Below are positions 2,331-51,102 of a stretch of DNA of 64,000 nucleotides, one piece after another; the first letter of the stretch is position 1, and every line of letters begins with the position of its first letter. Origin of the DNA: Takakia lepidozioides. Its lineage: Eukaryota > Plantae > Bryophyta. The position numbers were made by a program, and so were the translations under genes. Under the pieces are notes generated by a model, which saw only the letters and a list, made by a program, of their open reading frames with translations, did not search any database and had not been told where the DNA came from. The stretch is taken from contig CM060733.1 in the NCBI GenBank assembly GCA_030704615.1, forward strand, positions 27,838,001-27,902,000. Direction: 5' to 3'.

Positions 2331-5300
2331 ATGAGCAAGGAGGCTACCTGGAGGTGGAGAAATATGAGTATTTACTTCCAGCAGTGGTCAAAATTCAGCA
2401 AGAGAGTTGCTGGCATATGCAAGGATATGGAAAGCATGGAGCTTTGGAAGGAGTATTGTTCGAACCCCAGTCCACGGTGTAACAATCGAGGGAATAAGGT
2501 GGGTGTCTGTTTTCTCACTGCACAATTCCCTGTGGCTGGAAACCCCATATACATGTGTTGCCCCTCTCGCAAGCTACAAGGCTAGAGGCTGCTAGAGGGG
2601 GATTAAAATCTCTCTCCCTCTCTCCTTCAGACATGTTTTTGTAGTCCTGTTACCAATTCAGCATATTCTCTGGAGCCTGGTAGGTAGTTTGCCAGTAAAT
2701 TATGGGTTGTCATTATCTGTGATTTTGTGTTCTGGAGGCAGGGATAGCTCAAGGAGGCAGGGAGTGAATGTGGGTGCAGATCCATCGTAGAGGACCAGGT
2801 CTCAAGCACAAGCATATGAACGAGGCACAGTGGATTGCCAGCAACAAGAAACCTCCTTGGATGACAAGCTGGAGGCACCTAGGGGTAAGTATCCTTTTTG
2901 GGATGGATTCTGAACGAGAGAGAGAGAGAGAGAGAGAGAAGCATGTAGAAAATAGAATTTAGGGGGTGATAACTGGGAGACTTCTTGCTACACTGTTCCT
3001 ACGTTTGATCACATGACATGCATGCATTCTGTCAAGGATGGCTCTTTCCGAAGGGTTCTTTTGCCCCTCATTGGCTTACAAAGACCAGCAGGTTGTTGTC
3101 TAGTCAATCTGAAGTTTTTGACAAGTTTATGCTAGGGATTTGCAGAAAAATATGAAAAGAAACGATTACAGAAGTGGAGAAGCTCTTGAATGATGGTTTT
3201 GGAAACCCCAAACAGTGGTGGGACTATCGAGGCAGTAAGGTGACAGCCTGCTATGTTACAGCAGTGTGCAAACGACAAGATCAACGGAAAACCTTCCTCG
3301 CAAATTAGTGATGTTGTCCATGGTCTCTCCCGTGTCTCTCTCACTCTGTTTTTGTGCATCGGGGTTGAGTTGTTTGTCAGTTTCTCTGGTTCTGCTTTAT
3401 TGTCTACGGTGAGTGTTGACATCTCCTATGGACAGAGAAAAATTGTGTCTTTCCTCAACACTGTGACTGGCAGTGCAACCACATTTGCACGTGCCACATC
3501 TCTTGCAAGTGAGAGGACTAGCGGAGCCGGTCTACATCATGGTTTCTATGTTCAGGTTTCTTACTCATTGTTTTCAGAGGTTCTTTTCCTATGCAGAGTC
3601 TTGGCAGCTAGTCACTAAAAAATGATTGGATTGTCTTGTACTCTGTGATGGATTCTCTGAGATACAAGGCTTGTCAAATACACGGGGTGGGGTGGGGGGG
3701 GGATCTATCCTGTGAATTCTGTGGATGGAGGGAGAGCTGAGTGAGGGGGGCCTGGAGTGTGGTGCAGATCAATCCCAGAGGATTAGATTTCAGGCACAAG
3801 GGCACGGAAGAGGCACTGTGGATTGAAGACTACAAGAAACGTACATGGGTCAATGGTCAATTGAAAGTAGCAGCAGCACAGTTGTTTGAATCAGATACCT
3901 CCAGACGAAGAGAGAGAGGTTACAAGAAGTCTTCTGGCTCTTGGGATGTGAGGACAGTATGTAAAATGAGAGTGTGGGTGTGGAACAAGACAAGAGGACC
4001 AGATTGCAGGCATAAGGGCACTGAGGAGGCACTGTGGATTGAAAGCTACAAGAAACCTGCATGGATAGATGGTCAGCTGGAAGGAGGAGCAGCACAAGTT
4101 TTTCAATCAGACACCGCCAAACAAAGAGAGGGGATTCACAAGAAGTCTTTTGGCACGCGGGATGTTAGGACACTATGTAATACAGGACAACTGAAAAAGG
4201 CTCTGCACAGTTTGAACCAAGGTGGCATTCTGGCAGACTCCATCACTTATATCTCCATCTTGCAAGAGTGCACCAAGATGAAAAGCCTAGCAGAGGGAAA
4301 GCAGGTGCATGCCCATATTATCCAAAGTGGATTCAAGCCAGACATCTTACTACACAACACCCTTGTCAACATGTATGCTAAGTCTGGTAGCATGGTCGAT
4401 GCACGCCTAGTGTTTGACAACATGCCTGAACAAGATGTGTTTACGTGGAATATAATGATAGCAGGATATGCCAAGAATGGGCGTGGCAGGGAGGCTTTCA
4501 AGATCTATGAGCAAATGCTACGTGAAGGGATGACACCAGACAATGTCACTTTCTCCTGTCTTCTCAAAGCGTGTGCCAGCCTGGAAGCTTTGTTAAAAGG
4601 CATAGAAGTCCATGCTGACATGATCAAAACTGGAATTGAGCCTGATATTATTCTGGAGAATACCCTCGTTGACATGTATGCCAAGTGTAGGAGCATGAAG
4701 GATGCTCGTCAAGTGTTTGACAAGATGACTAAACGAGATTTATTCACATGGAGGGCGATGATTGCAGGGTATGCTAAGCAAGGGTGCAGCAGGGAGGCCT
4801 TCGAGATCTATGAGCAAATGATACGGACAGGAGTGACACCCAACAGTGTCACATTCTCTTGCATTCTCAATGCATGTGCCAGCCTGGAAAAGGGCATAGA
4901 GATCCACACTGAAATCATCAAAGCTGGAATTGAACCGGATATCATTCTGGACACTGCCCTTATTGCCATGTATGTCAAATGTAGGAGCATGAAGGATGCG
5001 CGTCGGGTGTTCGACAGTACGACTCAACGGAATGTGGTCTCATGGACTCTGATGATCACAGGATATGCCAAGCACGGGTGTGGTTGGGAGGCCCTGCAAA
5101 TCTATGAGCAAATGATATGCGAAGGGGTGACACCTGACAAAGTCACATTCCTTTGTGTTCTCAATGCATGTGCAAGCTTGACAACACTGCAAAAGGGCAT
5201 AGAGGTCCACAGCGCCATCTTGAAAGCTGGGATTGTATCAGACATCATTGTGGACACTGCCCTTGTTGACATGTATGCTAAATGTGGGAGCATAAACGAT

Positions 5301-6944
5301 GCTTGTCAAGTGTTCAACAATATGGCTCGTCGGAATGTGGTCTCGTGGAACGTCATGATCGGAGGATATGCGCAGCTTGGGCGTGGTACAGATGCTTTCA
5401 AGACCTACAAGAAAATGATACTGGAAGGGGTTATGCCGGACAAAGTTACTTTCACCTGCGTTCTAAATGTGTGCGCCAGTCTGGCAACACTGGAAAAGGG
5501 CAAAGAGGTCCATGCTGACATGATAAAAGCAAGAATTGGACCAGATATCATTCTGGAGAATGCCCTTGCTGACATGTATGCCAAATGTGGGAGTATGACG
5601 GATGCACATCAAGTATTTGACAATATGGCCAAGCGAAATGTGGTCTCATGGAATTTGATGGTGACAGGATATGTTCAGCATGGGCGTGGAAGTGAGGCTT
5701 TGATGATGTACACACAAATGATAGGGGAAGGAGTGATACCCAACTGGGTAACTTTTGTTGGCATTCTCAATGCATGTGCCAACCTGGCAGCCCTGGAAAA
5801 GGGCAAAGAGGTCCATGCTGACGTGGACAAAATGGGAATTGAGTCAACTATTATTCTGGGCAATTCCCTTGTCGACATGTATGCGAAATGTGGGGACATG
5901 AAGAATGCGCATCAAGTATTTGACAACATGGCTAAACGAGATGTGGTTTCTTGGAGTTCACTGCTTGCAGGATATGCTCAGCATGGGTGTGGTAAGAGGG
6001 CATTTGAAATCTACGAACAAATGAAAAAGGAAGGGGTGACGCCTGACAGTGTCACGTTTGTATGCATTCTCAATGCGTGTACAAGCCTGACAGCCCTGGA
6101 CAAGGGCAGAGAGGTCCACTCCGACATCATCAAAGCCAGAATTGTGGCAGATATCATTCTTGACACTGCTCTGATGGCCATGTATGCGAAATGTGGCAGC
6201 ATAAAAGATTCGCGTACAGTATTTGACAGCATGGCTGAACGAAATGTGGTGTCATGGAATGCAATGATCGCAGGATATGCTCAGCATGGGTGTGGAAGGG
6301 AATCTTTCAAGATCTATGAGCAAATGATACGGGAAGGAGTTATGCCAGACAAAGTCACGTTCATTAGCCTTCTCCATGCTTGTGCCAGCATGGGAACCCT
6401 GGGAAAGGGCAAAGAGGTCCATGCTGACATCATTAAAGCCAGTATTGTGCCTAATGTCAATCTGGAGAATACCCTTGTTGACATGTATGCCAAATGTGGG
6501 AATATAAATGATGCTCGCCAAGTTTTTGATAATATGACGAAGCGAGATGCAGTCTCATGGAGTGCGATGCTTGCAGGGTATGCTCGGCATGGGTGTGGCA
6601 TGGAGGCCTTGCATCTGTTTGAACAAATGCAGCAGGAAGGCTTGAAGCCAGATGGTATCACCCTTACATGTGTCCTCTCTGTATGTCGTCATTTGGGACT
6701 GGTGGATGAAGGCCTTCACTACTTCGATTCGATGACTCGAGATCATGGCCTCACTCCTACAGTAGAGCATTTTGGTTGCATGGTGGACCTTCTTGGCCGT
6801 GCAGGGCAATTGAATGAGGCCGAGGCTTTCATCAACAAAGTGCCAATCAAACCAGATGCTGCAGTGTGGGGTACCTTGCTTGGTGCCTGCAGAATTCATG
6901 GCAATGTCAAGCTGGCAGAATGCGTGGCAAAAAGCATGCTCTAG
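2331..6944 (+). CDS. PLS-class PPR protein (26 P/L/S motifs plus truncated E1) with N-terminal OSB-type PDF motifs; 5' exons partly degenerate
   Basis: Main exon 3768-6944 (acceptor gtgcag|ATC) reads L-S-(P-L-S)x7-P2-L2-S2-E1, with ~101-aa triplets and TVEHFGCMVDLLGRAG / VWGTLLGACRIHG. Candidate upstream exons: 2331-2498 (ELWKEYCSNPSPRCNNRGNK|gt), 2780-2884 (IHRRGPGLKHKHMNEAQWIASNKKPPWM) and ~3172-3239 (EKLLNDGFGNPKQWWDYRGSK|gt). PPR identity is certain; the exact exon model is less so. Confidence 0.8.
2915..2939 (+). repeat. (GA)n microsatellite in intron
   Basis: Direct observation. Confidence 0.9.
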
Positions 6945-7084
6945 TGGCACCCATAGCTGCTGCCACCTATAGGCTGTTATTGCAGATCTACTCTGTGGCT
7001 GGCTGGCGCAATGATATTGCAAAGGTGAGAAAACTGATGAAAGACAGAGGTATATGAGAGGAGCCACCTCTTTGCTGCTGCTAA
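6945..7084 (+). pseudogene. Out-of-frame remnant of the PPR E1/E2 extension
   Basis: After TAG 6942-6944 a shifted frame reads AATYRLLLQIYSVAGWRNDIAKVRKLMKDRGI*EEP (consensus YVLLSNIYA..GRW..V..VR..MK.RG..KEP). No DYW follows. Confidence 0.8.
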
Positions 7085-7136
7085 GATGAGGTAGGTGCTG
7101 CTAATATGGAACCTCTATTCTAGGGTGGGACAATAC

Positions 7137-9001
7137 TGTAAGGACAGGTCTGCAAAAGGGGCCAGGTCTCGGCTATTTCAAAGATGACATAGGTGTTGCT
7201 ATTCTGTCAAAAAAGCTAGGGTTGCTATCGGGACCACACTGCAAAGGTGACGATCATTTGGCCTCATCAACCCATCCTGGACATTGGGAAGGTGGGCTAC
7301 GACTGCTAGATCCAACAAAAGACATCTCCTTGCTAATCTTTGGAGAGGAGGAAACCCACATAAACCCCGTCGCAGAGCCGGATGGGTCCAAAAGACAAAG
7401 GCAGTATGAGGGGGTCAGTCACTGCTTACAAGGCATGCTCGTAACAGATGCCAGAGACAACGGAACGTGGGAAGCCACGCAGAAAGCGAAGACCTGTAGA
7501 GACTGGAACCCATCATGTGGCTCCACTCATCCCGACCCCTCTACTTCTAGTACTGCGTGCAAAAGCTTTACCATCTACTCTCCCTGTCTTCCAACATCCC
7601 CACTACACTATATGCTCTCTCTCAGCAATGTCGGGGGCAGACCTCTCAGTCCCTCCTCTATGGGCATAGAGGTTTTGGATTTTCCTTCTTTGGTGGATTC
7701 TTTAGTCACTCATGTACATCATAATGTCCATGGCGGAGATTGTTTTACAATAGTTTTACAAGTTACAACAGTTCTAGGTACATCACAGAAGTGTAGTCTC
7801 GACGAGATGGTTAGCTAAAATGTCTTTGATCGAATAGGTCATCAGGTTGAGTCTGCTTCGCGTTATCATTGTTCGTCCTTCAGTATATAATTTTTAAATC
7901 GTCAAATTTGGAAGGGAAAACCTTAGTGTGGACACTTTCATATCCATGTATGTATATTTTTCTCTCCTTTAGTTCCTGTATCCTCCTCAATACTTGCTAC
8001 TGCATCTTTGATACGCTCCTCCTGCCCCCTCCCGCGCAAAGCCCAATCACTACTACAGTCTACAGCCAAGCCAGAACACCACTCAGCTCGAGATATTGTT
8101 ATGTACCACTAGTGCCGTTGGCCCAAGTGTCAAGTGTCATCTAAGCCCAAGTGCGTCTCCTATGTCAAGGCCCAAGTGCGACCTCTAGGGTAGCCTCTGC
8201 CGTTTGCCCAAGGGTCCAAATGTCATCTAAGTCCAATGCAAATCTGACTAAGGGGGGCCTTAACTCAATCTGAGGTATTAAGTGCTACTGATCTAGATTA
8301 TGAGTGCAAATCCAGAAAAGCACTGAAGGAAAATTAGAAGAAGGCAATGCGTGGATTACACTAGTGCTATGAGGGCTGAGGGTTCATGGGAGAGAAGAAC
8401 CAGGGAGAGTAGAATCAGTAGTGACGGTAGTGGCAGGCAAAAACTGAGTGCCTCTTTTATGAAAATGTATTCTATGTATAATGCAGCCTTGAGGCTGTAG
8501 AAGAGGGCTTCAAATGCTTCCAGTTGATGTCTAGTTCAAACTCTGGCGATATGGTGGAGTGTCGTGCCATGGTCCCGCCAACATGATGGAGGGAGCTCGG
8601 TCCATATGCAGGTGTCGATCTCTGGGGAGAAACATATGATGAAGTGGCTTATGTTGCTTAGCCTAATTGAGGACTAGTAGAAGATTAGCCACGATCATAA
8701 TTAAGTAACGGCAGGTAATCCACCACTATGTCGACGAGGGTGGCAGGGCTCTCCACGTGATAATTACTTGGGCGAACTTTCCTGCGTTGAAAGCACCATG
8801 GCCAGTAGAGGAACCTAGGTATAAGATCAGGCTGAGTTTGTGCATACTTATTATTGTGGTGACAGTTGAGCGATCGGACTGATAGATGCATAGCAGAGAC
8901 ACACAGCTTGTTGTTGATGTTCATCGAGTCTTCACACTTAGTGTGTGTGAAAATTCACTATCAATACAAATTTCATATCTCTGACTGATTATGTCTTAAC
9001 A
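7137..9001 (+). mobile_element. Putative LTR (solo or 3' LTR remnant)
   Basis: Imperfect inverted termini TGTAAGGACA...TGTCTTAACA, a purine-rich tract (tagggtggga) just upstream, and clustered gcccaagtg motifs at 8120-8212. No TSD found. Confidence 0.35.
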
Positions 9002-19600: not shown

Positions 19601-22600
19601 AGGTAGTTGCTCGTCATTTTCAGGCACCTCCACCTAGTTCTACACAAAAGGAGTCTCTGTTATTGAGAGATTTCTGCTCCTGTAGTTTGGATGGTACAGG
19701 AAAAGGGGAGAGGTTTCAAAAAGATAAGGAAGGTTACTACTAGCACTGCATAAGTGGGCCATATTCTGTATATGAGATCAGCTGTCCATTTAGATGCACT
19801 TTGGAAGGAGAGACAGAAACAGAGAGTAGCAGGATGAGGGAAGTTAAGTCTGGAAAGGGTGGCAATCGAGGGAACAGGCCTGTAAGTTGCAGCAACCTTG
19901 ATAGGGATGCTTAGTTGGAGGGTCGCTGCAGGTTGGTCATGTGTGGAGCACACGACAGCATATATGAGCTCACTGCATATCGTGATCCCAATCTTGTTCC
20001 CATAAAGTGTTTTTATGGGCCTGATCCCAAGGTGAGAGGTCACTCTTGTTTTCAGGCCTCTTAATGCTCTTTGTGGGAGTCCTGATCTTTCTTAGTAATA
20101 TGCATGTGACCCATTGATGGAAATGGGAAGCTGCTTACAGATTGTCAAAGCATTTTTCAGTAGCAAATCTCTTATTTATTCTGCACCAAAATGTTGTCTT
20201 GTACTTGCAGACACAGTACTTTGCACTGTTGGCCACAGATAGAAATGCTTCTGTAAGGGAGGAGCTGTTGAGAACAATAGCTAGTTGGCTTCGTGAGCTT
20301 GACGAAAGAAAGGAACATGAGGTCCGCCTCATTCCGTAAGTAAACTTCCAGAGGCTTCAAGGGTTCGGACTATTTGTACTCTCTCCAGGTCATTTCTTCA
20401 TGACAGTTGTCACCTCCATCTGTCGAAACCTTTGCATTTCCTATTCTACTCATAGAGTCACCCGTTATTACTTAAACTTCTGAGTGCATTTGAACAAAAG
20501 GCATGTGCACATGAGCTGTCGAAGGGAAGTTCTGAGAGCCCGAAACGCCTAAGAAATCTCTTAGATATATTGCACACCAACAGAACTCAAGAGTGCATTT
20601 GAAAGAAAGTCTTCCTGAAGCAGAAACCCAAGTTCTGAGTATGAGTACCTCTCTTCCAGTCCCCTCCATTATCCTGCAAATGGCTACACGACTAAGAGCG
20701 AATTTACATGAGCAGGTATCTCTTAGCTGGTTTCCAAGATCCAAGCCCACATTTGCAGGATCTTTCCTTTCAACTGATGGATGAAGTCGGCCTACAGTAA
20801 GCTGCAATTTAAACCTACCGTTATTTTCTACTTGAAGAGATTTGTAGCAAAAACCTCACCTAATACATCTACCTTTGTCTGGCTGCCAATGTTGGGCAAG
20901 CTTCACTGGAAAAGAAATTGCAGAAAGATTGAATTGCTGAGGCAACGCAACCGCCACAATTCGAAGTGCTCAGATGTAGTACTGGTTGCATGGCATGTGG
21001 AACGGACAGGTATGAAGAGGAGAATGAGAAAGAAGTCAAGGATATGCGGGTCTACCTTACTGAAGATATTGACGACATTGACTCACTGGCTTGGACAACC
21101 TTGCCCCATCCATTCAAACGTCAGTTCATCTTCTCGAGCTTCCTGTAGACGCCCTGAAGTGGCTCTTTCCTTCTTTAGAAACTCCCATTCCTGGGCAGAG
21201 GCCTTCAGCTTTGAAGATCTGATGTGAATCAGGCACATTTCTTTGTTCTCCCCTGTCCTCCTCATAGCCCCCGTGGACGTTATGAAGTTAATTTGTTTTC
21301 TTGTTTCCTGCTTTCTCGTCCCATAAGCGCCTTGAGCTTTCCGTGGATGTCATAATGTGTCATTTCATTTCTCTCCCTCTCTCTCCTTTGTCACCAACTT
21401 TAAAATTAGCCCTGGTCCTGTTGGGGTCTATTTGCTGGGCAGCTCACATACAGCAAGTTGATACTTCTGTGAAGGGCTGTCTAGAGGATATCTGGAAAAA
21501 CCTGAACTAATTGTCTTTACCAAGGTAAGTCACACTACCAGAGTGAGCCCCTCACAAATGTAGCTTCCCTTTTGTTCCGCCCAAACTGGGCGCGGGGTCT
21601 ATGGCAACAAGGCTACAGGAAAAAATCATATGGATGGAAGACGGTTTGTTCATTCTTTCAACAAATTTTTAATTCATGTCATACTTGGCCATAGCATACA
21701 ACTAAATATATAGGGTTCCATTTGATATCAAGGAGTTTGGCACAGGTAGACCATGCTTAGGGGCAAGGATTATGGTGAAAAGTGTGGCAGCCATCATATT
21801 GCATGCCATAGCTGGCGATTTGGAATGTTGGACCTGCGGTACCAAGGATTTGGCTGCGAACTTTTTGTACACACTATTACTGTTTGCTGAGGAGAACATC
21901 ACGATGCACCTGCAGCCCATGGTCAAACTCTTGCACAAAGGATTGAGTGAAGCATCCATTGCCCCCAAGGTGAGCTCTTCACAGAATCCTGTGGAAAAGA
22001 ATGGAAGAGGGCAGAAACTTTTTAGTGACCATGCAAAAGCCAAGGAACTTCATGATGTCAAACTTATGCATGGAAAGTCCCAAAGGGGGGGGGAGAGAGA
22101 AGAGTAATGAAGTATTTTATTACTTTCATGAGAAAGAAAGAGATAAAGTTATTATGTCTGCAGGAGGGCCAAAAGGCCTGAGGGACCAAGTAGAACAACA
22201 TGGCGGAGTATGTCATCCAGCCGTTAGCTGTTAGCTGTCCTGATAGCTAAGGGCTTTGCCAGAGAGAGGATTCTCTACAAGACACCATCAGCCCTCGGCC
22301 CATCAGCCTTCACCCTGCCTATGCCATTCCCGTTACTGCCTTGACAAGAAGGGACTACAGAATGGAAGGCCTTTCTGAAGTACATGAGACAGCCATTGAT
22401 CCACAGGTTGTTGGGTAGCTGCCTTATACGGCTGCAATCATGCTCAACAGATAAAGGAAGAAAGTTCAGATTCTCTTACATGCATGCTTGTTTGATTGCA
22501 GATTTTGGAAAGCGCAAGGCTTCTTGGGTTCTTTGTTGAACCAAGCTCCTACTTGCCAATCTTGATGCCACGAGTGACTGGGGATATTCATGCAGATGTC

Positions 22601-25600: not shown

Positions 25601-26822
25601 GACACACCATTGCCTTTCAGTTGAGGCATCAATGCTTTTTCATTTTTGTGGGAATTGGAACCATGCCTCCTTGTTGTCACACCACGTAGTATTAACCAAA
25701 CTTGGCAGTAACGATTTTATTCAATCGCAGGTTGGTCGATTCATTCCAAAGCTGCATCAGAGAGTCTGTTGATGATGATGTGAAATTGCGGTCAGTAGTT
25801 TCTGGCAACCTTTCTACATTGTCGCACCTTCATCAATTCATCAGTTCATTCACTGCTTTGACACCAGAGGTCTGCCGATTAGCAGTACTAAATAGTGTTG
25901 TAGGTCAAGTGAAACAAAGTATGCACCCCAAGAAGAGGACATTTTCTTTATAGTTTATGTGAGATATTGGCTTTTATCTCCTATCAGAGGTACAAGAGAG
26001 TGGTCATTAAAATCCAAATCATATGTTTGGTACCAGGCTGTTGCATGAAGTGCAATTGATGTTAACAACAGGACCGAGTGAGTGGGCAAATGGAAAGAAA
26101 CATCTTGGGCATCTTCTGGAGGGTTTTTTGCTGCCTTGCTTGAAGCATGGGGAATCACTGCTTTTTCCCACCCTTGAGGCCATTCAAGCAATTTTGTCCA
26201 AATCTTGGCCAACATCTCTCACATCTAAAACATCATTTCGTGATGCTCTTGAGAACCTTATGGGTTCTGTTGAGCGATGTTTCCACAACTCCAGAGATCA
26301 AGATCAGGGTGGAAACAGTCACAGTGTACAACATGAAGGGCAAGAAGATCAAGTCCAAGAGAAAAGAGAACAAGGTGACGCAGTTGAAGGTGACAAATCT
26401 CGGTGCCAACCGGATCTAGGTGCAGCAGAACAAGATGAATGTCACAAAGAGGGAGATGAAAGTGGCCAAAGCAAAAGCGTTGAGGACCAAAGAGCAGACA
26501 GCATACAACCACATCGTAGAAAACGTGAAGGCAAAGATAATCCAGTTGCTGAAAAATGTAGAGGTAAGATGTCCATCCCTTCTAGACCTGGTCATCAACA
26601 TGCATGTACAAATTTTGTTACACACCTTGATAGTTTGATAATCAGAGTTATACTAGTGCAAATCTCGGGGTCGTTCCCCCTGGTCTGTTTATTTGTACAC
26701 AAGGAAGTATCTCTGTGCACATGATTGTACAAGGCTGCCATTCTTTACCTGCTCGTTTCTATGTTTCAGGAACAATGGTCTTTCTGCTCGACAAAATGAC
26801 TCGTGGACTTGGCAGTGATTGA
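16665..26822 (+). CDS. DNAAF5: Dynein axonemal assembly factor 5 / HEATR2-like HEAT-repeat protein, ~15 exons
   Basis: Mostly phase-consistent GT-AG exons: 16665-17782, 18206-18332, 18738-18908, 19457-19602, 19932-20031, 20211-20335, 20716-20796, 21010-21119, 21747-21969, 22502-22737, ~24568-24714, ~25167-25358, 25731-25790, 26037-26563, 26770-26822. Motifs LNRNLNCLVD, KPLLRRFADSSEKCRQLSI, EKSEEVRLQL, LSHNRYRVRVAAL, RPCLGARIMV. Confidence 0.8.
19105..19420 (+). mobile_element. 3' end of (CATTT)n-tailed RTE-like LINE in DNAAF5 intron
   Basis: Reverse complement of 22847-23140; FFYCPLYYEIRG...HYEDQKCL; ends in catttaatttcatttc. Confidence 0.85.
21270..21372 (+). mobile_element. Two short 3'-tail fragments of the same RTE-like family
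   Basis: ccgtggacgttat and cccataagcgccttgagctttccgtggatgtcataa...catttcattt match the family 3' UTR. Confidence 0.65.
22847..24086 (-). mobile_element. 5'-truncated RTE/RTEX-like LINE (RT thumb region plus C-terminal Cys/His motif), frameshifted
   Basis: LGARGTTPSHILNAEF, RFRVGSHNLRIETGRW...REDRLCPAC...EEHFFFYCPLY; gaaatgaaatgaaatg tail at 22847. The clade assignment is inference. Confidence 0.8.
24089..24405 (-). mobile_element. Two further stacked 3'-end copies of the RTE-like family
   Basis: gaaatgaaatgaaatggtgctttataacatccgcggaaagctc at 24089; aagctcaaagagcttatgggaca at ~24258; HYEDQRYL. Confidence 0.75.
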
Positions 26823-26959
26823 TCTTTCACAAACTGCTGGCAATCTAATATCAATGCATATGGCATGTGAACCATAGCCAATATAGCAAGGCATTGTTCG
26901 GGTGGATGCCCTCAAAGCCTTTCTTGGTACAATTTCGAAGCTGGCAGTGTTCCCAAGCA

Positions 26960-27285: not shown

Positions 27286-27583
27286 AGCATCGCCTAAGGT
27301 GCATCCACTTAACCTCCCGTTCAGACTCCAGCCAAGCCATTGTAGTTGTGTTGGGCAGTGTCCCTGCCAGGACAGCTGGGAGGGCCAGTCGCACTGCCTT
27401 GGAGAAATGCTTCTCAAATGAACCTGTTACAAGAGGACTGAAATCACCTGTGGATGTACATATGCGCCTGGTCCTTGACATTGATGCTCCTCTGACACCC
27501 TTGTAACTTCCATTATTGATCTCACCTTCATCTCTTGTCACACCTGCCAGTTGCACCGGCTTCCATGTTTGATAGCAGCACTG

Positions 27584-29794
27584 TCAAGTCCCAGCCTGCT
27601 GTGTATCCCACTTCAGAAGGTGATTTGCAGCGCACTCTGCTAGCTGCACATCACCATGCATCTTGCAGGCAGCAAGCAAGGTCCCCCACACAGAAGCATC
27701 TGGTTCCATTGGCAGCTTTTTAATGAAGTCTTCTGCCTCATCCAATCGCCCGGCACGGCCAAGAAGGTCCACCATGCAGCCACAATGCTCCACCGTGGGA
27801 GTGAGGCCATGATCACGACTCAAGGAGTCAAAATAGTGATGGCCTTCATCCACTAGGCCCACATGGCTACATGCAGAGAGAATAGATATAAAGGTGATAC
27901 CATCTGGCTTCAAGCCTTCCTGTTGCATCTGTTCAAATAGTTGCATAGCCTCCCTACTACACCCATGCTGGGTACTGCCTGCAATCATCACATTCCACGA
28001 GATGACATTTCTTTGAGCCATATTGTCGAACACTTGACATGCCTCCTTGAGGCTTCCGCATTTGGTATACATGGCAGCAAGGGCAGTCTCCAGAATGATG
28101 TCTGGCACAATTCCAGCTTTAATGATGTCAGCATGGACCTCTTTGCCCTTTGCTAGTGCTGCCAAGCTGGTACATGCATTGAGCACACAAGTGAACGTGA
28201 CCCTGTCGGCCGTCACACCTTTTTGTTGCATTTGCTCATAGATCTCGAAAGCTTCCCTACCACATCCATGCTGCGCATATGCTGCAATCATCACACTCCA
28301 TGATACTGCATTCCGTTCCGCCATATTGTCAAACACCTGTCTCGCATTGCTTATACTTCCACATTTGGCATACATGTCAACAAGAGCAGTCTCTAGAATG
28401 ATATCGGGTGCAATTCCAGCTTTAGAAATGTTGGCATGGACCTCTTTCCCTTCTTCCAGTGCTCCTACACTGGCACATGCATTGAGAACGTAAATGAATG
28501 TGACCCTGTTGGGCATCACCTCTTCCCGATGCATTTGCTTATAGACACTGATGGCCTGTCTACCACACCCATGCTGAGCATATCCAGAGATCATCGCACT
28601 CCATGAGACCACATTTCGTTCAACCATATTGTTGAACACTTCAAGTGCATCCCTCATGCTCCCGCATTTGGCATACATGTCAACAAGGCTATTCTCCACA
28701 ACAAGGTCTGGCACTATTCCACTTTTGCTCATGTCAGCATGGACCTCTTTGCCCTTTGCCAGGGCTCCTAAGCTGGTACACACATTGAGAATGCATGTGA
28801 ATGTCACCCTGTCGGCCATTACCCCCTCCTGTTTCATTTGCTCATAGATCTCCACAGCATCCCTACCACACCCGTGCTGGACATATGCTGCAAGAATCAC
28901 ATTCCATGAGACCACAGTCCTCTTAGCCATCTTGTCAAACACATGACGAGCATCCTCTACACTCCCGCATTTGGCATACATGTCAGCCAGAGTATTTTCC
29001 AGGATGACATCTGGCACAATTCCCCATTTGTCCATGTCAGCATGCACTTCTTTACCCTTTTCCAGGGCTCTTAAGCTGGCACACACATTGAGAAGGCAAA
29101 TGAATGTGACCTTGTCTGGCATCACCCCTTCCTGTATCATTTGCTCATAAATACCGAAAGCCTCTCTGCCGCACCCATGCTGAACATACCCTGCAATTAT
29201 CCCATTCCATGAGACCACATCTCGTTCAGCCATATTGCTGAACAGTTGATGTGCATCTGTTACCCTCCCACATTTGGCATACATGTCAGCAAGGGTGTTC
29301 TGCAAAATGATATCTACTACAATTCCACTTTTGCTGATGTCACAATGGACCTGTCTGCCCCTTTCCAGGGCCCTTAGGCTGGCACATGCATTGAGGACGC
29401 AAGTGAACGTGACCTTGTCTGGTGGCACCTTCTCCCATTGCATTTGCTCATAGATCTCCAAAGCCTCCCTACCACAACTACGTTTGGCATAACCTCCTAT
29501 CATTATATTCCACGTAAACAAATCGCGTTCAGGCATTTTGTCAAACACTCGGCGAGCATCCATTAGGCTCCCGCACTTGGCATACATGTTGACAAGGGTG
29601 TTGAGTAGAAAGATGCTTGGCTTGCATCCACTTTGGATAATGTGGGCATGCAGCTGCTTGCCCCCTGCTAGGTCTTTCATTTTGATGCATTCCTGCAAGA
29701 GGTAGCCATAAGTATTGGAATGTTCCTGAATGCCAGGGTGATTCCAAACATGCAGCGCCTCTTTCAGCCGTCGTGCCTTAGTTAGTGTCCTCAT
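27584..29794 (-). CDS. PLS-class PPR protein (20 motifs plus E1, E2 frameshifted, no DYW); possibly pseudogenised
   Basis: L-S-(P-L-S)x5-P2-L2-S2-E1. After TGA 27584-27586, shifted frames give VLLSNMEAGATGRCD and MKVRSIME (decayed E2). The upstream linker is homologous to PPR1 (KRGIDKISFGNSGDMRTL vs REGIHKKSFGTRDVRTL) with a 1-nt loss at ~29830. Confidence 0.85.
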   Translation of the reverse strand: MRTLTKARRLKEALHVWNHPGIQEHSNTYGYLLQECIKMKDLAGGKQLHAHIIQSGCKPSIFLLNTLVNMYAKCGSLMDARRVFDKMPERDLFTWNIMIGGYAKRSCGREALEIYEQMQWEKVPPDKVTFTCVLNACASLRALERGRQVHCDISKSGIVVDIILQNTLADMYAKCGRVTDAHQLFSNMAERDVVSWNGIIAGYVQHGCGREAFGIYEQMIQEGVMPDKVTFICLLNVCASLRALEKGKEVHADMDKWGIVPDVILENTLADMYAKCGSVEDARHVFDKMAKRTVVSWNVILAAYVQHGCGRDAVEIYEQMKQEGVMADRVTFTCILNVCTSLGALAKGKEVHADMSKSGIVPDLVVENSLVDMYAKCGSMRDALEVFNNMVERNVVSWSAMISGYAQHGCGRQAISVYKQMHREEVMPNRVTFIYVLNACASVGALEEGKEVHANISKAGIAPDIILETALVDMYAKCGSISNARQVFDNMAERNAVSWSVMIAAYAQHGCGREAFEIYEQMQQKGVTADRVTFTCVLNACTSLAALAKGKEVHADIIKAGIVPDIILETALAAMYTKCGSLKEACQVFDNMAQRNVISWNVMIAGSTQHGCSREAMQLFEQMQQEGLKPDGITFISILSACSHVGLVDEGHHYFDSLSRDHGLTPTVEHCGCMVDLLGRAGRLDEAEDFIKKLPMEPDASVWGTLLAACKMHGDVQLAECAANHLLKWDTQQAGT

Positions 29795-30076
29795 ATCCCC
29801 AGAATTGCCAAAGGAGATCTTGTCGATCCCTCTCTTGGTCCTGTTTCAAAAGCAGTGGTGATGGTGCAGGTACCTGATTCCAACAATTTTGCCTGATTCA
29901 GCTCTGCCATCCTGCATACTTCCTAGTCATAAACATTCTCTCCAACTCAAATAAGACATCCGAGCTCCTAAATACTTCAAAGAAAGATCTGTTGAGGACA
30001 GGGTTCTTTTCACAAATGAACAAGGTAGAAACTACTTCCAGTGGACACCTTTAAAGCTAAACTGTACTAATACTAC

Positions 30077-30286
30077 CTGTTGTCTGCACCCATAAATCAT
30101 CATTGATACCGTACCCGTTTGGCTCGCTCCATGGCATACATCAATAGTAGAAGCGTCCAAGAATCGTACTCGACCTTGTATCACGGCAGGCAGCTCTGCT
30201 TGTACCCAAGTAGGGTTTGACCGAACCCCAATTCATAGGAACTCTTTTTTGTGCTTAAAGCTGAAGTGTGGTGATCTTGGAATTTT
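30077..30286 (-). pseudogene. Upstream exon of the second PPR gene encoding the C-terminal half of an OSB-type PDF motif
   Basis: ccacag|KIPRSPHFSFKHKKEFL*IGVRSNPTWVQAEL; the conserved W is TGA at 30235-30233; candidate donor after 30077. Confidence 0.7.
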
Positions 30287-30559
30287 CTGTGGAACCACCA
30301 GTGGGCAGCTAAACAGCCATAACTTCCACCCCAGCTAGACTAGGCCATAACTTCCTTCCCTACAACAGGGTATAACTTTGAAAAATCTTGATAACCTGCT
30401 GCTTTCTTTTGATGAAGAGCAGAAATGTCATTGCTTTGAGCAACTTACGGAATTCCAGTTCACAAAACATCAGCATGGCTCCAATCACAACCCCTCCTTG
30501 ACAAACTCTTTCACCTCCTAGCTGAGCTAGCCTCACCATCTCACACCTGTGATCCTACA

Positions 30560-31880
30560 AATGTTTGGCAAGCTTAACTGGCAAATTGCTGAGGCAACAT
30601 AACCGCCACAATGCGCAGTGCTCAGACGTAGTACTGATTTCACAGTATGTGAAATTTAAAAGAAGTAAATGATACGCGGGTCTACCTTACTCTGAAGATA
30701 TTGACGACATTCACTCACTAGCAGGGACACCCTTGCCCCATCCAACGTCAGTTCACCTTCTTGAGCTTCCTGTAGACGTTCTGAAGTGGCTCTTTAGTTG
30801 TGTTTCTGTTCTGTGTGTTCCTTATGCCCATCTGGATTCCCAGGAATAAAATAAACTTTTTCCTTTCCTGATCCAAATCATGTGTTTGGTGCCTTTGCAT
30901 GAAGTGCAACTGATGTGAACGATAGGTGCAAGCGTTTGTGCAAATGGAAAGAAACATATTGCGCATCTTCTGGAGAGTTTTTCACTGCCTTGCTGAGGAA
31001 TCGCTGCTTTTTCCCACCCGTGAGGCCATCCACGCAATTTTGGCCAACATCTCTCACCTCTTAAGCTAAAATACCATGTAAAATATGAAGGGCAAGAAGA
31101 TCAAGGCAAAAAGAGAAAAAGGTGCCACGTCTCTGTGCCAAGTGCAGCGGGACAAGATGAAAGCCAGAAAGCGGGAGATGAAAGCCATCAAAGCAAAAAT
31201 AGACGAGGATCAGAGCGTAATACTACGTCAACATGAAGGCAAAGATAATCGAGTTGCTTCTAGACCTCGTCTTCAAATTTTGTTGCACACTCTTCATAGT
31301 CTGCTGATCGACACAGCAATCCTTGAGGTTACTTTCCATGTAAACCCGTTCCCGTTCTATGACGTCATACAAAAATGGGTTTGACCACGGGTCACTCCTC
31401 CCCTTTCCGTGCACCACCATGGCACGGAAGCGGGACTCCACCGGCACTCTTGCAGGTGTGTGACCCACTTCTTCCTCGCACCCTCGACTTTCCTGGTTTT
31501 CCCGCGCTTTATTGTATCTGTAGGCACATCTTCCTGTTGTGCACAATGTGACCGTCCTCCTCCACACGCTATACAAATTTATGGATTTCAACTTTGAGAT
31601 GTCGGCGTTCACTACCCCTTCCCGTCCCCATGGTTGCGAGGGCATGAGCATGGTTACTCATGCTCTTGCAAATCTCATGGTCATTCCCCTTGGTCTGTTT
31701 ATTATATACAAGGAAGCAATTTCCATGCACACTTGTTCAACTATTCTTAACCCACTTGTTTCTGTGTCTCAAAGGTGTTCTTGCTCGACGAAATGTCTCG
31801 TGGACTTGGCAGTGATTGATCTTCCCCAAAGTGCTGGCAATCAAGAATCAATGCCATTCAGCAAGACATTGTGTGGGTGT
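30560..31880 (+). pseudogene. Decayed, intron-retaining partial duplicate of DNAAF5
   Basis: 30560-30795 matches 20889-21168; 30870-31305 matches 26012-26640; 31665-31880 matches ~26655-26910. Deletions and stops throughout. Confidence 0.9.
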
Positions 31881-41776: not shown

Positions 41777-44700
41777 ATGGAAGCTGTCATAACCTCCATC
41801 AGCTCCCGTGTTGTGTTGCACAGGCATTCGTTGCTAGTCGGACACCCTTTTGCATTGCAGTGGTTTCGCACCAGCGGGGTTTTCTTGGTAAGTGATAACG
41901 CACTGCATATTTTGTTGCTGTAGGGAGGGAAGATTTAAAGAAAATTGCGTGCCATTTGGTATGAGAGAGGAAGATGGGACATGAAGAAATCTGGACCCCG
42001 GGTATCAGTAAACAAGGAGAGAGTGACTGGTTACGTTATGAAAGCTGACATCATGGAATGCCATTGTTGTGGGTGGTAAGAGACAAGGGGTTCGTTTGAG
42101 AACATTGCCAGCTTCGAAATGGGGCATACCAAGAAAGGCTGTGATTACATCCAGCAAAAGCGCTACGAACGAGTCTATCCGGGCATCAGAAGATGACAGA
42201 GAAGAAAACGTGATAGGTGGGAACTCCGCTGAAATTACTCAGGTTGCTTCTTCCTCGGTCAAAGAAGCTGTGACTGCACGATCTAAAGGGAAACGAGGGC
42301 CTAGGCGAAAACCTGTGGATACTGAAGTCAAGGTGACCAACCTAACTGCGGAGACCAGCAACGAAGAAGCAAACACGCCGGGGATTCCAGGAGATAGAAA
42401 AGATGAATCTTCCAACGAAGTGGTAGGAAATAAGGTTTCAAAAAGGAAAACTGCAGTAAGGACCACAGATGCCAAACTTAGAAGCGGTCAAAAACGGGCT
42501 AGCAAGGCTGATGGTGAGCTCGAATGGACCAAATCACTGACAGAAATTTGCATTTAGAGTAGACAATATAGAATTGCTAAATACGTTTGGTAATGGGCTT
42601 CCAGGTTATCTGTACATCGGCTTAAGCTAAGTTGTGGTCTCAATTTTTCGTGATAGACGTTTTCTGATTCGTGAATTGTCGAGCTCACCAATCGAAAGGT
42701 TGACAAATGATGAATTGTCGAAAAATCCAGAAGCACGGCCAGAAAGTGTGGAAGGTGCCAGGTCTGACCCAAGCCAGGAGAGAGTGAATGGCAGCTCTGT
42801 TCAAGGAACTGTGCATTCAACTGAGGAGATTTTCCCTCAGTTTCAAGGACAAAGAAAAGAAGAACAAGAGAGTGTTTTTACAGGGAAGACCTCTGAGACT
42901 CAAAGTAATGAGAGGCAAGTGGGCACCATGGACGAGCTAGGTATGATAGTCTTTACTCTCAAGTACTCAAAAAGATTTGGCCTTGCTGAAATTCATGGAT
43001 GTTCCAGTAACGGAAAGCAATACCTTCTTCAGTTTAATTGCTGCGTTCAGCTACAGACTTCAATTGCAGGGTAGTATTATCTTTGCACAATTCTCTACTG
43101 TACACTCTAGTAGGAGGGATGTGAGTGGGGTGGTTCCATTGGCAGGTTTTGCTTCTCTTCTGTAGTGAGTAATACAAAGGGATCTTTCAGAGAACCACAG
43201 GGAGCGAACTTCCTTTTTTGCAGATTCCTTGTTTGCAAAAGAGGACCATGGGATGGCTGAGACCGACGAGGATGACGAGGGACAGCCACTGTGGATGGAG
43301 GAAGATGATCCCACATGGCCTGATGAGGGTGAGGATGGCTGGGGTTTCCGCACTTCCCAGTTCTTTGAGGATGTGAAAATCAAGCCACAGAAGAAATCCA
43401 GTGATGAGGATGACAGTGATGATGAGGATGACGACCTGGCATTGAATTGGGAAACAGAAGCTGATGAATGGATCATAAAGGAGATTACATCTGTAGAGTG
43501 GGAGGCTACGGTGTTTGCAGATCCTAGTCCCCTGCTAGTCTATGTGTTTGCGAGATATGGTCGCAGGTTCGTGTATCAGCCTACCATACTCTCTCTTGTT
43601 TCCCTTGGTGGCGGTTTTGGTTCTAGAGTTTGACCAATGTGTTCAGGCTTTCCAGATATCGTCTTAGCATCAATGTGCTGTGTGTGAGTAGCCCAAAAGT
43701 TAGAGCCCAACAGGCCAGGGCTTAAGGCTCAGCCTCGAGATTTTCAAAGTTCATGAACAGGTACAGGAACCACGTTCTGATGTTCTTGAAGAGGGTCACT
43801 GACAAAGTATCAGAAAATTATTTGAACCAGACCAGGACGTGTGGTCTTGGTATGAGTGGAGAGGGTCAAGGAGGGTTGGAACATACAGACAGAGAGGAAG
43901 AGTGACTAGGCAGCTAGCACATTCGGCAGATGAAGCATGGACATGACCTACCCGTTGGGGTGGGTTGAATGCTGGCAGAGGACCTGATGGATGGAATATG
44001 CTGAAGGAGCTAGAAAAGGCAGTCCAGACCATCTGGGATTCCCAAAAAGCCCCTCTTCGGGTACGATTTCTTCTTCATTGACTCTCTTCAATTTCCATTT
44101 GTTGTCAGATGTAGCCCATTAAAACTTTATACGGCTCTGTAGATCTGGTGTGCAATACATGTGTTCAGAGTGTTCAGATTAGAGCTTCCCAAAGAAAAAC
44201 TAATAGTAGGGCTCTTGACACCTTACATCACAGCCATGCCAAATGCATGAAATAGCGACTACACAATTTATCACGAGTGTGACTGAGCTCTTAGTTGCTC
44301 ACAACATAGTCCATGTGGAACTTTTAATGTTCTTTAGGACTAGCATGTAAGAACAGACGTCAACTGGACACCAGTAGTTGAAGACCGTTGAGTATTTGTG
44401 ACTTTGTCCAGTTGCCATCTAGTAATGGAGTTGTGGTATGGTCAAAAACAGGCAGTGAAGGTGGATGCAGGCCTCGAGATGGACTTGGCATCTGCAATTC
44501 GCATTAACTGTGATGAATGCCCGGTGCTGATCTTTATCAAGAATGGCAAGCTCCTCTACTCCCTTAAAGGTAAGGCTTGCTGTACTTGTGTTGCTTGGCA
44601 AGACTGCAGCTTTGTTTCTCTATTTGCTTGCTTCCAGTTGGTGGTCATTGTACATCTAGAAACTTTGGTACGCTTCTGGACATTGTTTTGGAAGTCAGAA

Positions 44701-46280: not shown

Positions 46281-49200
46281 TCACTGTCTAGAGGAAAACA
46301 TTCCATACTGGCGATCGTAGTTCGCCACCACGCTACGTGGAAATATCAAATGGCGTGTTGGAGCCCAAAAAATGGTGGTTGTTATTACAGACCCAAACCC
46401 AATTACCATGCCCAAGACAAAGCCAGGAATTGATAGAACATCTTCCACCCGCTCTATGAATGTCATCTCACCAGTACTGATAGCTGGGCCCCGTGGGGTT
46501 GGCAGTGAGCCGTTCATATTTTCTTGTGAGGGGCATCGGTTGGAGAGAGGAAAGCCGCATAGATTTGGATTGTCGAAAAATGACGAGTTTGGGAATTTTG
46601 AGCTGGAGACGCCATTTGGAATCTGCCCAGAGAGGTTGTTGTGGGAGAGATTAAGGAACCCCAAGGCACTCAAGTCTTCCAAGTTGTCTGGAATTGTACT
46701 ACTCAGTAGATTGTAGGAGAGATCCAACGACTCTAATGCGCTGATGTTGCGCACGCTCCTTGGGATGGGGCCTGTGAAGGAATTGTGGGGCAAATTCAGG
46801 TAGAGGAGCTCACTTAGCTGTCCAATCTCTGCTGGAATCTCGCCAGTCAACGCATTTGCTGAGACGTCAAAAGAGGTTGTGGTCAATAAGACATATTCGA
46901 TTGTCCTTGTGATGCCCTTGAGAGTGATTTGGAGGTCATCAGCATAGAGAGTGAAAGTACCATTCAATCCTTCGTTTATTCCAGTGGATGCATTTGCCTT
47001 CACATTGAAGCCCTTCAACTGATCAAACGTTTTCGGGAGCCCACCTATGACGAAGTTGTGTGAGAGATCCAACACCTGCAATCGAGTCAGATTCCAGACC
47101 CAATCTGGAATTGGACCACTAGTATGCAAAACTGAGCACCCGTAGTTCCTGAAAATCGCCACTCTTGAAAAGTGGGATAGTCCCATTGAACTTGTTTCCG
47201 CTCAAGTCAATCGACACAAGATGGGTACATTTAGCCAAGGAAATTGGAAGTTGTCCTGTCAATTGGTTGTTGTTCACTGATAGTGTCTCAAGAGAACCAC
47301 CAATCTTTGCCAAATCTAATGTGAATTGTCCTGTGATCGAGTTGTTACCAAGTAATATCCTCTGCAAACCCGAACAGTTCTCAAGCTCATTCGGTATGCT
47401 CCCACTCAGGTGATTGTAGCTCCAACAAAGATGCACAATTTCCCAAACTACTGGGAATGGTGCCTCTAAACTTGTTGTTCCCTAGGTAAAGTTTCGTTAG
47501 GTTTTGCAGTTGCCCTAGCTCCATTGGTATGTTTCCACTCAACTGATTGTTGTCCAAGTCCAACTCCACCAAAGAGGAACAATTTCCCAAACTAGAAGGA
47601 ATGGTGCCTCTGAATTTGTTTCTGAAAAGGTAAAGGAGCGTCAACTTTTGCAACCTCCCTAGCTCCATCGGTATGTTTCCAGTGAGCTCATTGGAGTCAA
47701 AATCCAGCTGCACCAACGATGAGCAATTTCCCAAACTAGCTGGAATGGTGCCTGTAATGCTATTGTTCCAAAGATAAAAAAGATAGTTAGATTTTGCAAT
47801 CTCCCTAGCTCCAGCGGTAGAGTTCCACTGAGCCGATTCCGGCTGAAATCCAACTCCACCAACGAGGAACAATTTCCCAAACTAGCAGGAATGGTGCCCA
47901 TTAAGTTGTTTCTGAAAAGGTGAAGGAGCGTCAACTTTCGCAACCCCCCTAGCTCCATCGGTATGTTTCCAGTGAGCTCATTGGAGGCCAGACCCAACCG
48001 CTGCAAAGTTGAGCAATTTCCCAAACTAGCTGGAATGGCGCCTGTAAGGCTATTGTTGAATAGGGAGAGTATTTTTAGGCTTCGCAACCGCCCTAGCTCC
48101 ATCGGTATGTTTCCAGTGAGCTCATTGGAGGCCAAATCCAACCGCTGCAAAGTTGAGCAATTTCCCAAACTAGCTGGAATGGCGCCTGTAAGGCTATTGT
48201 TGAATAGGGAGAGTATTTTTAGGCTTTGCAACCGCCCTAGCTCCATCGGTATGTTCCCACTGAACTGATTGTTGGACAACTCCACCTCCACCAAAGATGA
48301 CCAACCTCCCAAACTAGCAGGAATAGTACCTGTAAGATTGTTGTAAAAAAGGTACAACTCCACCAAATATGAACAACCGCCCAAACTAGTAGGGATAGTA
48401 CTGGTAAGATTGTTATGACTAAGGTGAAGGAGACCCAGATTTGACAACTTCCCTAGCTCCATCGGTATGTTCCCGGTCAATTGATTCACGCTCAAATCTA
48501 GGTCCACCAAAGACGAGCAATTTCCCAATGTAGGTGGAATAGTGCCTACAAGGCTATTGTTCCATAGGTGGAGTATCGCTAGATTTTGCAATTGCCCTAG
48601 CTCCATCGGTATGTTTCCAGTGAGCTCATTGGAGTCGAAATCCAGTTGCACCAACGATGAGCAATTTCCCAAACTAGCAGGAATGGTGCCCATGAAGTTG
48701 TTTCTCAAAAGGTGAAGGAGCGTCAACTTTCGCAACCCCCCTAGCGCCATCGGTATGTTTCCAGTGAGCTCATTAGAGGCCAGATCCAACCGCTGCAAAG
48801 TTGAGCAATTTCCCAAACTAGCTGGAATGGCGCCTGTAAGGCTATTGTTGAATAGGGAGACTATTTTTAGGCTTTGCAACCGCCCTAGCTCCATTGGTAT
48901 GTTCCCAATCAATTGATTCTCGCTCAAATCTAGGTCCACCAAAGACAAGCAATTTCCCAAAGTAGGTGGAATAGTGCCTACAAGGCTATTGTTCCATAGG
49001 TGGAGTATCGCTAGATTTTGCAATTGCCCTAGCTCCATCGGTATGTTTCCAGTGAGCTCATTGGAGTCAAAATCCAGCTGCACCAACGATGAGCAATTTC
49101 CCAAACTAGCTGGAATGGTGCCTGTAATGCTATTGTTCCAAAGATAAAAAAGATAGTTAGATTTTGCAATCTCCCTAGCTCCAGCGGTAGAGTTCCACTG

Positions 49201-51102
49201 AGCCGATTCCGGCTGAAATCCAACTCCACCAACGAGGAACAATTTCCCAAACTAGCAGGAATGGTGCCCATTAAGTTGTTTCTGAAAAGGTGAAGGAGCG
49301 TCAACTTTCGCAACCCCCCTAGCTGTTGGGTATGTTTGGGGGGTGGAGGCCAAGGGGGGCAACCCAACCCATGGGTGGGAAAAATTTCCCAATTTAGCTG
49401 AATGGCGCCTGTAAGGCTATTGTTGAATATCGAGAGTATTTTTAGGCTTTGCAACCGCCCTAGCTCCATCGGTATGTTCCCACTGAACTGATTGTTGGAC
49501 AACTCCACCTCCACCAAAGATGACCAACCTCCCAAACTAGCAGGAATAGTACCTGTAAGATTGTTGTAAAAAAGGTACAACTCCACCAAATATGAACAAC
49601 CTCCCAAACTAGTAGGGATAGTACTGGTAAGATTGTTATGACTAAGGTGAAGGAGACCCAGATTTGACAACTTCCCTAGCTCCATCGGTATGTTCCCGGT
49701 CAATTGATTCACGCTCAAATCTAGGTCCACCAAAGACGAGCAATTTCCCAAAGTAGGTGGAATAGTGCCTACAAGGCTATTGTTCCATAGGTGGAGTATT
49801 GCTAGATTTTGCAATTGCCCTAGCTCCATCGGTATGTTTCCCGTGAGCTCATTGGAGTCGAAATCCAGCTGCACCAACGATGAGCAATTTCCCAAACTAG
49901 CAGGAACGTCTGTGAAGGTGTTGTACCAAAGGTGGAGGATCTGTAGGCTTTGCAACTGCCCTAGCTCCTTCAGTATGTTCCCAATCAATTGATTGTTGTT
50001 CAAATCCAACTCCACCAAAGATGAACAATTTCCCAAACTAGCTGGAATGGTGCCTGTGAAACCGTTGCTCCAAAGGTAAAGTTTCGTTAGTTTTTGCAAT
50101 CTTCCTAGCTCCATCGGTATATTCCCACTCAGTTCATTGTAGCACAGCTCCAGTTCCACAAGAGATGAACAATCTCCCAAACTAGCAGGAATGGTGCCCG
50201 TGAGATTATTGTTCCACAGATAAAGTGTCATTAGGTTTTGCAGTCTCCCTAGCTCCACAAGTATGTTTCCAGTGAGCTGATTGGAGTCCAAGTGCAAGTC
50301 CACCAAAGATGAGCAATTTCCCAATTCCGCAGGGATGACGCTTGTGAGGTTGTTGCATGGAGGTACACAATTGTTAGACCCTGGGTTCACATGTCAAGCT
50401 CCACTGGAGTTGAAATGAAATACTTAGATCTGCTGAAATCTCCAAGAGTTTATGGAACAAAAGAAAGCATTATTAAACAAGACAGAGGTGACCTCCACAA
50501 AGCCCAAAACATTGTTGCTTGAGCAAGTAAGGCAATAGCCCTTCAAGGGTGAAGTGACACCATGGATAAATAAGGCCTGCTTAGGCGGTAGGATTCTTCA
50601 TCTCCTCTATCGCTCTGCTCAAGGGTTTTTCTAAGAGTCAACAACTTACGCATGATTTGCAGATAAGCATTTCTGATCCTTGTCAAAATCATGGATTAGA
50701 AATTTGATAGACTAAGTAAACAACTGTCAATGGAGTGATGGTGCCTTCAAGCTCCATAACTCCAAGATTCAGTTCTATCACATGTGCGTGTGCTTCATCA
50801 CATGCGACCCCCTTCCAGAAGTGACAAATGTCTCTTCCGGCCGCTCTGCTCCAATTCGTTAGCATTCCTGTTGGATCCTTAAGTACGGCATTCTTGAATG
50901 CCAACAACACTTCTACGTCCGCCATCCGGCTCCGGCTTCTTGCGTAATTATCAACCAGTTTTGAGTTTTTGTGCTCGTGCAAGCCTGGATCAGAAACAGA
51001 CGATAGTGGTGTTGCCCCACACAACAAACCTGCAGCCATGACGCCTAGTACTAACAATGTGCCGAAAACCTCGTACAAACGTGTATGAGTCATCGCAGCC
51101 AT
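46281..51102 (-). pseudogene. LRR receptor-like protein (signal peptide, LRRNT, many 24-aa LRRs, island domain, 4 LRRs, TM, short tail, no kinase), disrupted
   Basis: LLAFK...DP.G.L.NW...C.WKGVAC; L..L.L..N.L.G.IP..LG repeats; NPNLCGFPL; TM VLSIPGFVLGMVIGFGSVI. Frameshifts or stops near 47120, 47420, 47780, 49150, 49400 and 50360, plus a TE insertion at 50411-50730. Confidence 0.9.
50411..50730 (-). mobile_element. RTE-like LINE 3' fragment inserted in the LRR-RLP coding sequence
   Basis: TSD TGGAGT at 50405-50410 and 50731-50736; tgaaatgaaa tail; rc aggatcagaaatgctt shared with the 19105-19420 family. Confidence 0.8.

Follow-up and report, generated by a model that had tools for sequence, protein, structure and literature searches.

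OSB proteins are plant single-stranded-DNA-binding proteins of genome maintenance that carry PDF modules. PPR motifs are organelle RNA-binding repeats, and the PLS-class PPR proteins with E and DYW domains are organelle C-to-U RNA editing factors. For the PDF motif, we follow the definition given for the OSB proteins (PMC6963530). PPR proteins and fusions both go unmentioned in a 2026 survey covering 182 OSB genes (PMC13393729), and no paper connecting OSB or the PDF motif to a fusion with PPR or DYW was found in the searchable literature, many subscription papers being outside its reach. The PDF-PPR family described below is provisionally regarded as undescribed.

The window analyzed here is a 64-kb stretch of plant nuclear DNA with a G+C content of 45%. 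Two complete PLS-class PPR arrays were found in it: that of gene 1 on the plus strand (3741-6944) and that of gene 2 on the minus strand (27584-29794; open over 736 amino acids, PPR_2 E-value 1.6e-113). The gene 2 array has the typical P1-L1-S1 organization with a period of 303 nt. A third PPR fragment (63645-63980, minus strand) is cut by the window end, and its upstream side falls outside the window. A run of receptor-like LRR ORFs (46281-50390, minus strand) contains near-identical internal repeats and is apparently split across several frames. At 90% likeness, the summed contig depth over the PPR motif segments at 27700-29700 reaches up to ~3,700 times the single-copy level, which means that the genome holds thousands of near-identical PLS repeat units. 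Gene 2 is flanked by direct repeats (26041-26857 and 30895-31854) of ~0.8-1 kb that are 82-89% identical in blocks and spaced by about 4.85-5.0 kb; either a repeat element or a segmental tandem duplication may have left them behind, and their neighboring units contain no PPR sequence. A segment at 30584-30795 resembles 20932-21168 (77%), about two flanking-repeat periods away.

As judged from its sequence, the region 30286-29795 upstream of the gene 2 array is very probably the decayed leader of a PDF-PPR family gene, and gene 2 itself is most likely a pseudogene. A phase-0 splice acceptor, ccacag, is read from the sequence at 30287-30292 (minus strand), and the frame that it opens at 30286 gives KIPRSPHFSFKHKKEFL, a stop codon after 17 codons, and then IGVRSNPTWVQAEL. 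This exon contains the decayed second half of an OSB-type PDF motif (30188-30286, minus strand), recognized by a hidden Markov model built from OSB-type proteins only. The earlier note had reported precisely such an acceptor opening a diverged PDF second half upstream of the minus-strand PPR ORF, and had read the conserved Trp codon of the motif (..ALW..) as TGA at 30235-30233; both readings hold, the second being taken directly from the sequence and shared by contigs X1, X2, and X5, the last of which comes from a second sample. The Pro-Asp-Phe triad is absent from the relic, which has P-H-F with His replacing Asp. A complete PDF motif is about 50 residues long and includes a first half of the form LW..FF.NP..WWDNR..K, and the relic falls short of it: neither the first half, nor a targeting exon, nor any other upstream exon of gene 2 was found by profile scans or by comparison with gene 1. 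A putative first-half exon with a donor near 30703, after ..CRQYLQSK, was not accepted, having no profile support and being run through unspliced by the X5 contig. A second relic candidate at ~30896-30858, CKGTKHMIWIRKGK (tblastx E-values 0.16-3.2), was likewise discarded, as it has no positive profile score and lies inside a flanking repeat.

Pfam has no PDF model, and profiles were therefore built from public proteins; a Pfam scan of the leader pieces yielded only noise. The OSB-only model was derived from 48 complete PDF motifs of OSB-type proteins, leaving out one PPR fusion and the sequence of the window, and was run on the six-frame translation of the window with stop codons written as X. 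Four places in the 64-kb window obtained positive scores. Three of them are the copies of gene 1 (3987-4082, 41 bits; 3771-3866, 36.5 bits; and 2786-2869, 20 bits), and the fourth is the relic (30280-30188, minus strand, 11.0-11.5 bits); the next-best place scores -2.5. When scored as a peptide, the relic obtains 23.8 bits with the same model, and the profile of lycophyte (Diphasiastrum) leaders assigns it 19.7 bits and also matches the KISFGNSGDMRTLTKARRLKEALH stretch. Comparison of fusion-type with OSB-type profiles did not tell apart the subfamily of the relic.

Several observations count against the PDF identity of the relic and could be read as a chance likeness in a lysine-rich upstream stretch. 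The P-D-F triad is not kept, the score is modest, only 9 of 29 residues match the best PDF copy of gene 1, and blastn and tblastx comparisons of the two leaders report the linker and the first repeat only, remaining silent on the PDF exon. We consider such a coincidence extremely improbable for three reasons: (i) none of 300 dinucleotide-preserving shuffles of the window equals the relic (maximum 6.8-7.4 bits), and none of 5000 shuffles of the 33-residue relic peptide reaches its score with the OSB, fusion, or lycophyte leader profile; (ii) the relic (30286-30188) lies on the minus strand, the strand of the gene 2 array (29794-27584), about 400 nt upstream of it, and this array is one of only two complete ones in 64 kb; and (iii) the relic starts at the intron position of the family and is followed by the family linker. 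The outcome under which the earlier note would have been wrong, a peptide scoring no better than shuffled controls, was thus not observed. At the level of sequence, these scores confirm that the relic is, above chance, an OSB-type PDF second half that has diverged.

The linker between the relic and the array is preserved in two parts. The first part, AELNQAKLLESGT...GPR (29831-29907, minus strand), is one base off the frame of the ATG and fits the ..GKIQSG.. stretch of the family. The second part, GIDKISFGNSGD (29795-29830, minus strand), precedes the listed ORF in the frame of the ATG, runs into the Met at 29794 that opens the 736-residue ORF, and obtains 7.4 bits with the family leader model. 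Between the two parts, a G run that is one base short (29828-29830, minus strand) makes a frameshift. The family linker is present in gene 2 as AKLLESGT .. SFGNSGDMRTLTKARRLKEALH, and its proposed homology to the linker of gene 1 is borne out by the family consensus and by two DNA alignments: a 28-nt match over AKLLESGT (82% identical, E-value 0.016) and a 183-nt alignment (73% identical, E-value 2.5e-25) that extends 45 nt upstream of the gene 2 ATG.

In gene 1 and in the public family members, the PDF half and the linker adjoin, whereas in gene 2 they are 283 nt apart, with the 9-bp direct repeat GCAGAGCTG at the edges of the extra segment (29899-30199, minus strand; copies at 30199-30191 and 29907-29899). 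No second copy of the 283-nt piece is present in the window, and its contig depth is single-copy; the depth over the linker region is ~7-fold, a hint that other, perhaps intact, members may lie elsewhere in this genome. The flanking 9-bp repeat might point to a transposon as the origin of the 283 nt, but terminal inverted repeats and other copies in the window are lacking and the depth is that of a single copy. A single open frame through the PDF half, the linker, and the array does not exist in gene 2, being interrupted by the TGA, the frameshift at 29830-29828, and the 283 extra nucleotides. These lesions, together with the failure to find any upstream exon or first half, leave the leader untranslatable, and the PDF peptide cannot be made from this broken copy.

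Homopolymer runs are typical sites of assembly errors, and if both the TGA and the frameshift were such errors, gene 2 would be an intact PDF-PPR gene. The earlier note had asked for a check at 30233 and at the G run, and no contig of X1, X2, or X5 has another letter or an indel at either place. Contigs X1 and X2 probably derive from the assembly's own sample and may represent its own reads, so their agreement is not independent. X5 comes from another sample and another study, and it has no differences from the assembly over 30111-30286 and is ungapped over 29670-29869. Moreover, the defects go beyond single bases, as they include the His in place of Asp, the 283 extra nucleotides, the missing first half, and the cut C-terminus. 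We therefore hold an intact gene hidden by assembly errors to be highly improbable, and the lesions are treated as real.

The X5 match over this region is provided by record 19 (376 nt), which aligns to 30286-30111 and 29869-29670 and ends exactly at 30286, the predicted acceptor. It skips 241 nt (29874-30114, minus strand); the GGTAC shared by both edges allows GT..AG ends on the strand of the gene, and the join across 30114-29874 keeps the PDF frame into ..TCTITTAFETGPREG. The skipped segment is quite probably an intron and the contig a spliced transcript, on the guess that X5 is RNA. Otherwise, the contig would represent a deletion allele, which would agree with the coverage of 30343-31300 by X5 and with its run type being only a guess. 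Gene 2 is possibly still transcribed and spliced.

At its 3' end, the gene 2 ORF stops 23 residues into the E motif (positions 1-23 of 63 of the E_motif model). In a three-frame translation, remnants of the E region continue past the stop with shifted frames (27300-27583, minus strand), and no recognizable DYW domain lies downstream; E2 is also missing. Gene 2 thus lacks the complete E1/E2 and DYW deaminase part. Just downstream of this end, the segment 26903-27274 is repeated in inverted orientation at 41777-42153 (82.5% identical over 383 nt), and this repeat may mark a rearrangement or an insertion that removed the E2/DYW part. The gene 2 ORF and three Diphasiastrum proteins were absent from the record in exact look-ups.

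The untranslatable leader, the early stop within the E motif, and the absence of a DYW deaminase make gene 2 most likely a pseudogene; that it is dead is our most likely reading of these lesions. Against this counts the 2.2-kb array without an internal stop codon, which would be unexpected in an old pseudogene. The open state of the 736-codon array suggests instead that the decay is recent or incomplete, and the much stronger decay of the PDF half implies that the array may have stayed useful after the loss of the leader. In this reading, the stretch 30286-29795 carries an OSB-type PDF second-half exon and the conserved linker and leads into the PLS-class PPR array; in intact members, leader and array are translated as one organelle-targeted protein; and in gene 2, the array has most likely lost its function only recently or is losing it now.

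Alternatively, gene 2 might still work as a PPR protein devoid of PDF, starting from the ATG at 29794 and retaining the relic as a 5' untranslated exon. The open array of 736 codons indeed scores as a well-kept PLS array, the second-sample contig joins the relic exon to the array start, and contigs X5 and X6 cover the 3' region 27300-27746. However, only ~25 residues would precede the first repeat, too few for an organelle targeting peptide; by comparison with relatives, the Met falls inside the conserved stretch of linker and first repeat; and the protein would end with the E motif cut after 23 residues and no DYW domain. We consider a working protein of this kind unlikely, and a gene in decay remains our preferred reading.

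Gene 1 provides the comparison for this leader. Its first PDF second-half exon (2780-2884, plus strand) scores 20 bits with the OSB-only model, and its second and third halves with their linkers (3768-4082, plus strand; 36.5 and 41 bits) are in frame with the PPR ORF. Both acceptors of gene 1 (2779/2780 and 3767/3768) are of phase 0 and lie at the same position of the motif, and that of the relic (30287/30286) coincides with them, just as the earlier note had held. The leader of gene 1 contains a tandem duplication of ~215 nt (3768-4170) with both copies in the frame of the array, the unit extending from a PDF second half through the linker into the beginning of the first repeat (..DVRT). Gene 1 is broken after its array (6944-7300), where E motifs continue in another frame with stop codons; taken together with the break in gene 2, this means that both PDF-PPR genes of the window have decayed at the C-terminus.

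A profile of the three PDF second halves of gene 1 (A1) detected 118 proteins at E-values up to 0.001 among 1.84 billion. Most of these are of OSB-like length (300-500 residues) and repeat the motif close to their C-terminus. When nine of the matches were scanned with Pfam, three were assigned to the SSB family (two of them below the curated cut-off) and the top match proved to be a PPR protein; the SSB family was found by Pfam in OSB-type matches such as P0009. The recovery of OSB-type proteins by this profile shows that the copies of gene 1 are true PDF motifs. A word search with the gene 1 leader returned nothing, its copies sharing no five-residue words with others. One further protein, P0041 (1526 residues, kinesin motor domain), has three weak PDF-like stretches of 12-15 bits before the motor, which could reflect either a further PDF fusion or an artefact of the gene model.

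The top A1 match, P0001, is an intact ORF of 1371 residues found on a Logan contig of 4755 nt. It begins with a short extension, continues with three complete PDF motifs (75-83 bits), and then enters a PLS array. A search among long proteins with the P0001 leader identified fusions in Adiantum capillus-veneris, A. nelumboides, Ceratopteris richardii, Sphagnum compactum, and transcriptomes. The nearest named relatives of gene 2 are PPR proteins of the lycophyte Diphasiastrum complanatum (49-54% identity). N-terminal PDF motifs, most scoring 58-85 bits, occur in 31 of the 120 best public relatives of its PPR protein: 21 of the 30 from D. complanatum, three from Calypogeia fissa, two from Sphagnum, and one from Adiantum, plus several models beginning at the second-half exon. 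Among the same 120 relatives, nine PDF-bearing proteins have a DYW-type terminus, and seven of these end in CGDYW.

The linker of the Diphasiastrum relatives, ..LG.IQSG.G...SFGNGD.VSKLC.EGRLKEALH, recurs in both genes of the window. In the PDF-PPR family, the motif is divided by a phase-0 intron between ..R..K and.NP..PDF, a position also occupied by the acceptor of the gene 2 relic. In the Sphagnum compactum PDF-PPR gene L003, a phase-0 intron lies at the same place in the motif, before residue 133, and the last exon opens with VNARYPDFKHKK after ..tcatag. The suggestion that the order of PDF, linker, and PLS array is ancestral to both genes, and thus marks a family, is supported by the 31 relatives, the common linker, and the Sphagnum intron. 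The exon and linker upstream of gene 2 are homologous to the leader of this family, which has a conserved intron, and carry the lesions described above.

In a tree of 44 PPR-borne and 48 OSB-type PDF motifs, the label changes 3 times, compared with 31 times when labels are shuffled, and a topology that unites all PPR-borne motifs in a single clade is not rejected (p-AU 0.58). From this phylogeny of fusion and OSB motifs, of the kind that the earlier note had proposed, the support for a single origin is weak, since the tree has 59 columns and its OSB rows are probably mostly from seed plants.

We propose that a large clade of PLS-PPR proteins, often with DYW, in mosses, liverworts, lycophytes, and ferns has in the PDF leader a module that is old, functional, and so far undescribed. 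The module would have been acquired once from an OSB-like gene and lost in seed plants, and it would be marked by the conserved intron within the motif; it would provide editing factors with an additional, sequence-unspecific hold on single-stranded nucleic acid or with a tether to the organelle nucleoid, and the two decayed genes of the window would be by-products of turnover. We regard this proposal as evenly poised between right and wrong. The role of the module in intact members, whether adding sequence-unspecific single-stranded nucleic acid binding or tethering the editing factor to the nucleoid, is a guess on our part.

The gene 2 locus is in itself an ordinary, most likely dead gene, and its value is as evidence for the PDF-PPR family. 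Genes 1 and 2 are neighbors with different repeat numbers, and they share a PDF leader that agrees in intron and linker; the design recurs in a quarter of the closest public relatives and in four major groups of seed-free plants. It places a DNA-binding module of genome-maintenance proteins on RNA-editing factors and, if the module works, bears on how these factors find or hold their substrates. Gene models that begin only at the second-half exon, such as P0135, P0148, P0174, and P0219, would also be corrected once the family is recognized.

Compared with OSB proteins, the gene 2 relic and the gene 1 copies match the OSB-only profile ..NP..PDFKHK.TGEALWI.....P.WV..QL, whereas the relic lacks the Asp, the Trp, and the entire first half. 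In OSB proteins, the PDF motifs are C-terminal and follow an OB-fold/SSB-like domain; in the genes of the window, they stand ahead of the PPR array, and Pfam finds only PPR-type families and no OB-fold/SSB-like domain in genes 1 and 2. None of the three PDF motifs in the one OSB gene looked at, L002 of Sinapis alba, contains an intron, whereas the motif of the PPR genes is divided by one of phase 0. Other OSB genes may have such an intron, judging by several short public ORFs whose start lies shortly before.NP..PDFKHK and whose sequence ahead of it is unrelated.

The architecture described for the PLS-E-DYW editing factors is a targeting peptide followed by the repeats, and a PDF leader does not appear in the searchable literature on them; gene 2 shares the typical P1-L1-S1 array with these factors but lacks E2 and DYW. 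The order of PDF, linker, and PLS array in gene 2 is that of the PDF-PPR proteins of Sphagnum compactum (P0126), Adiantum capillus-veneris (P0120), Ceratopteris richardii (P0125), Diphasiastrum complanatum (P0134 and P0175), and Calypogeia fissa (P0170), and of the transcript ORF P0001. The public proteins have open frames and complete motifs of 58-86 bits, whereas gene 2 has half a motif of 11 bits with a stop codon and a frameshift. It shares its linker with the lycophyte PDF-PPR members and its intron position with the Sphagnum gene.
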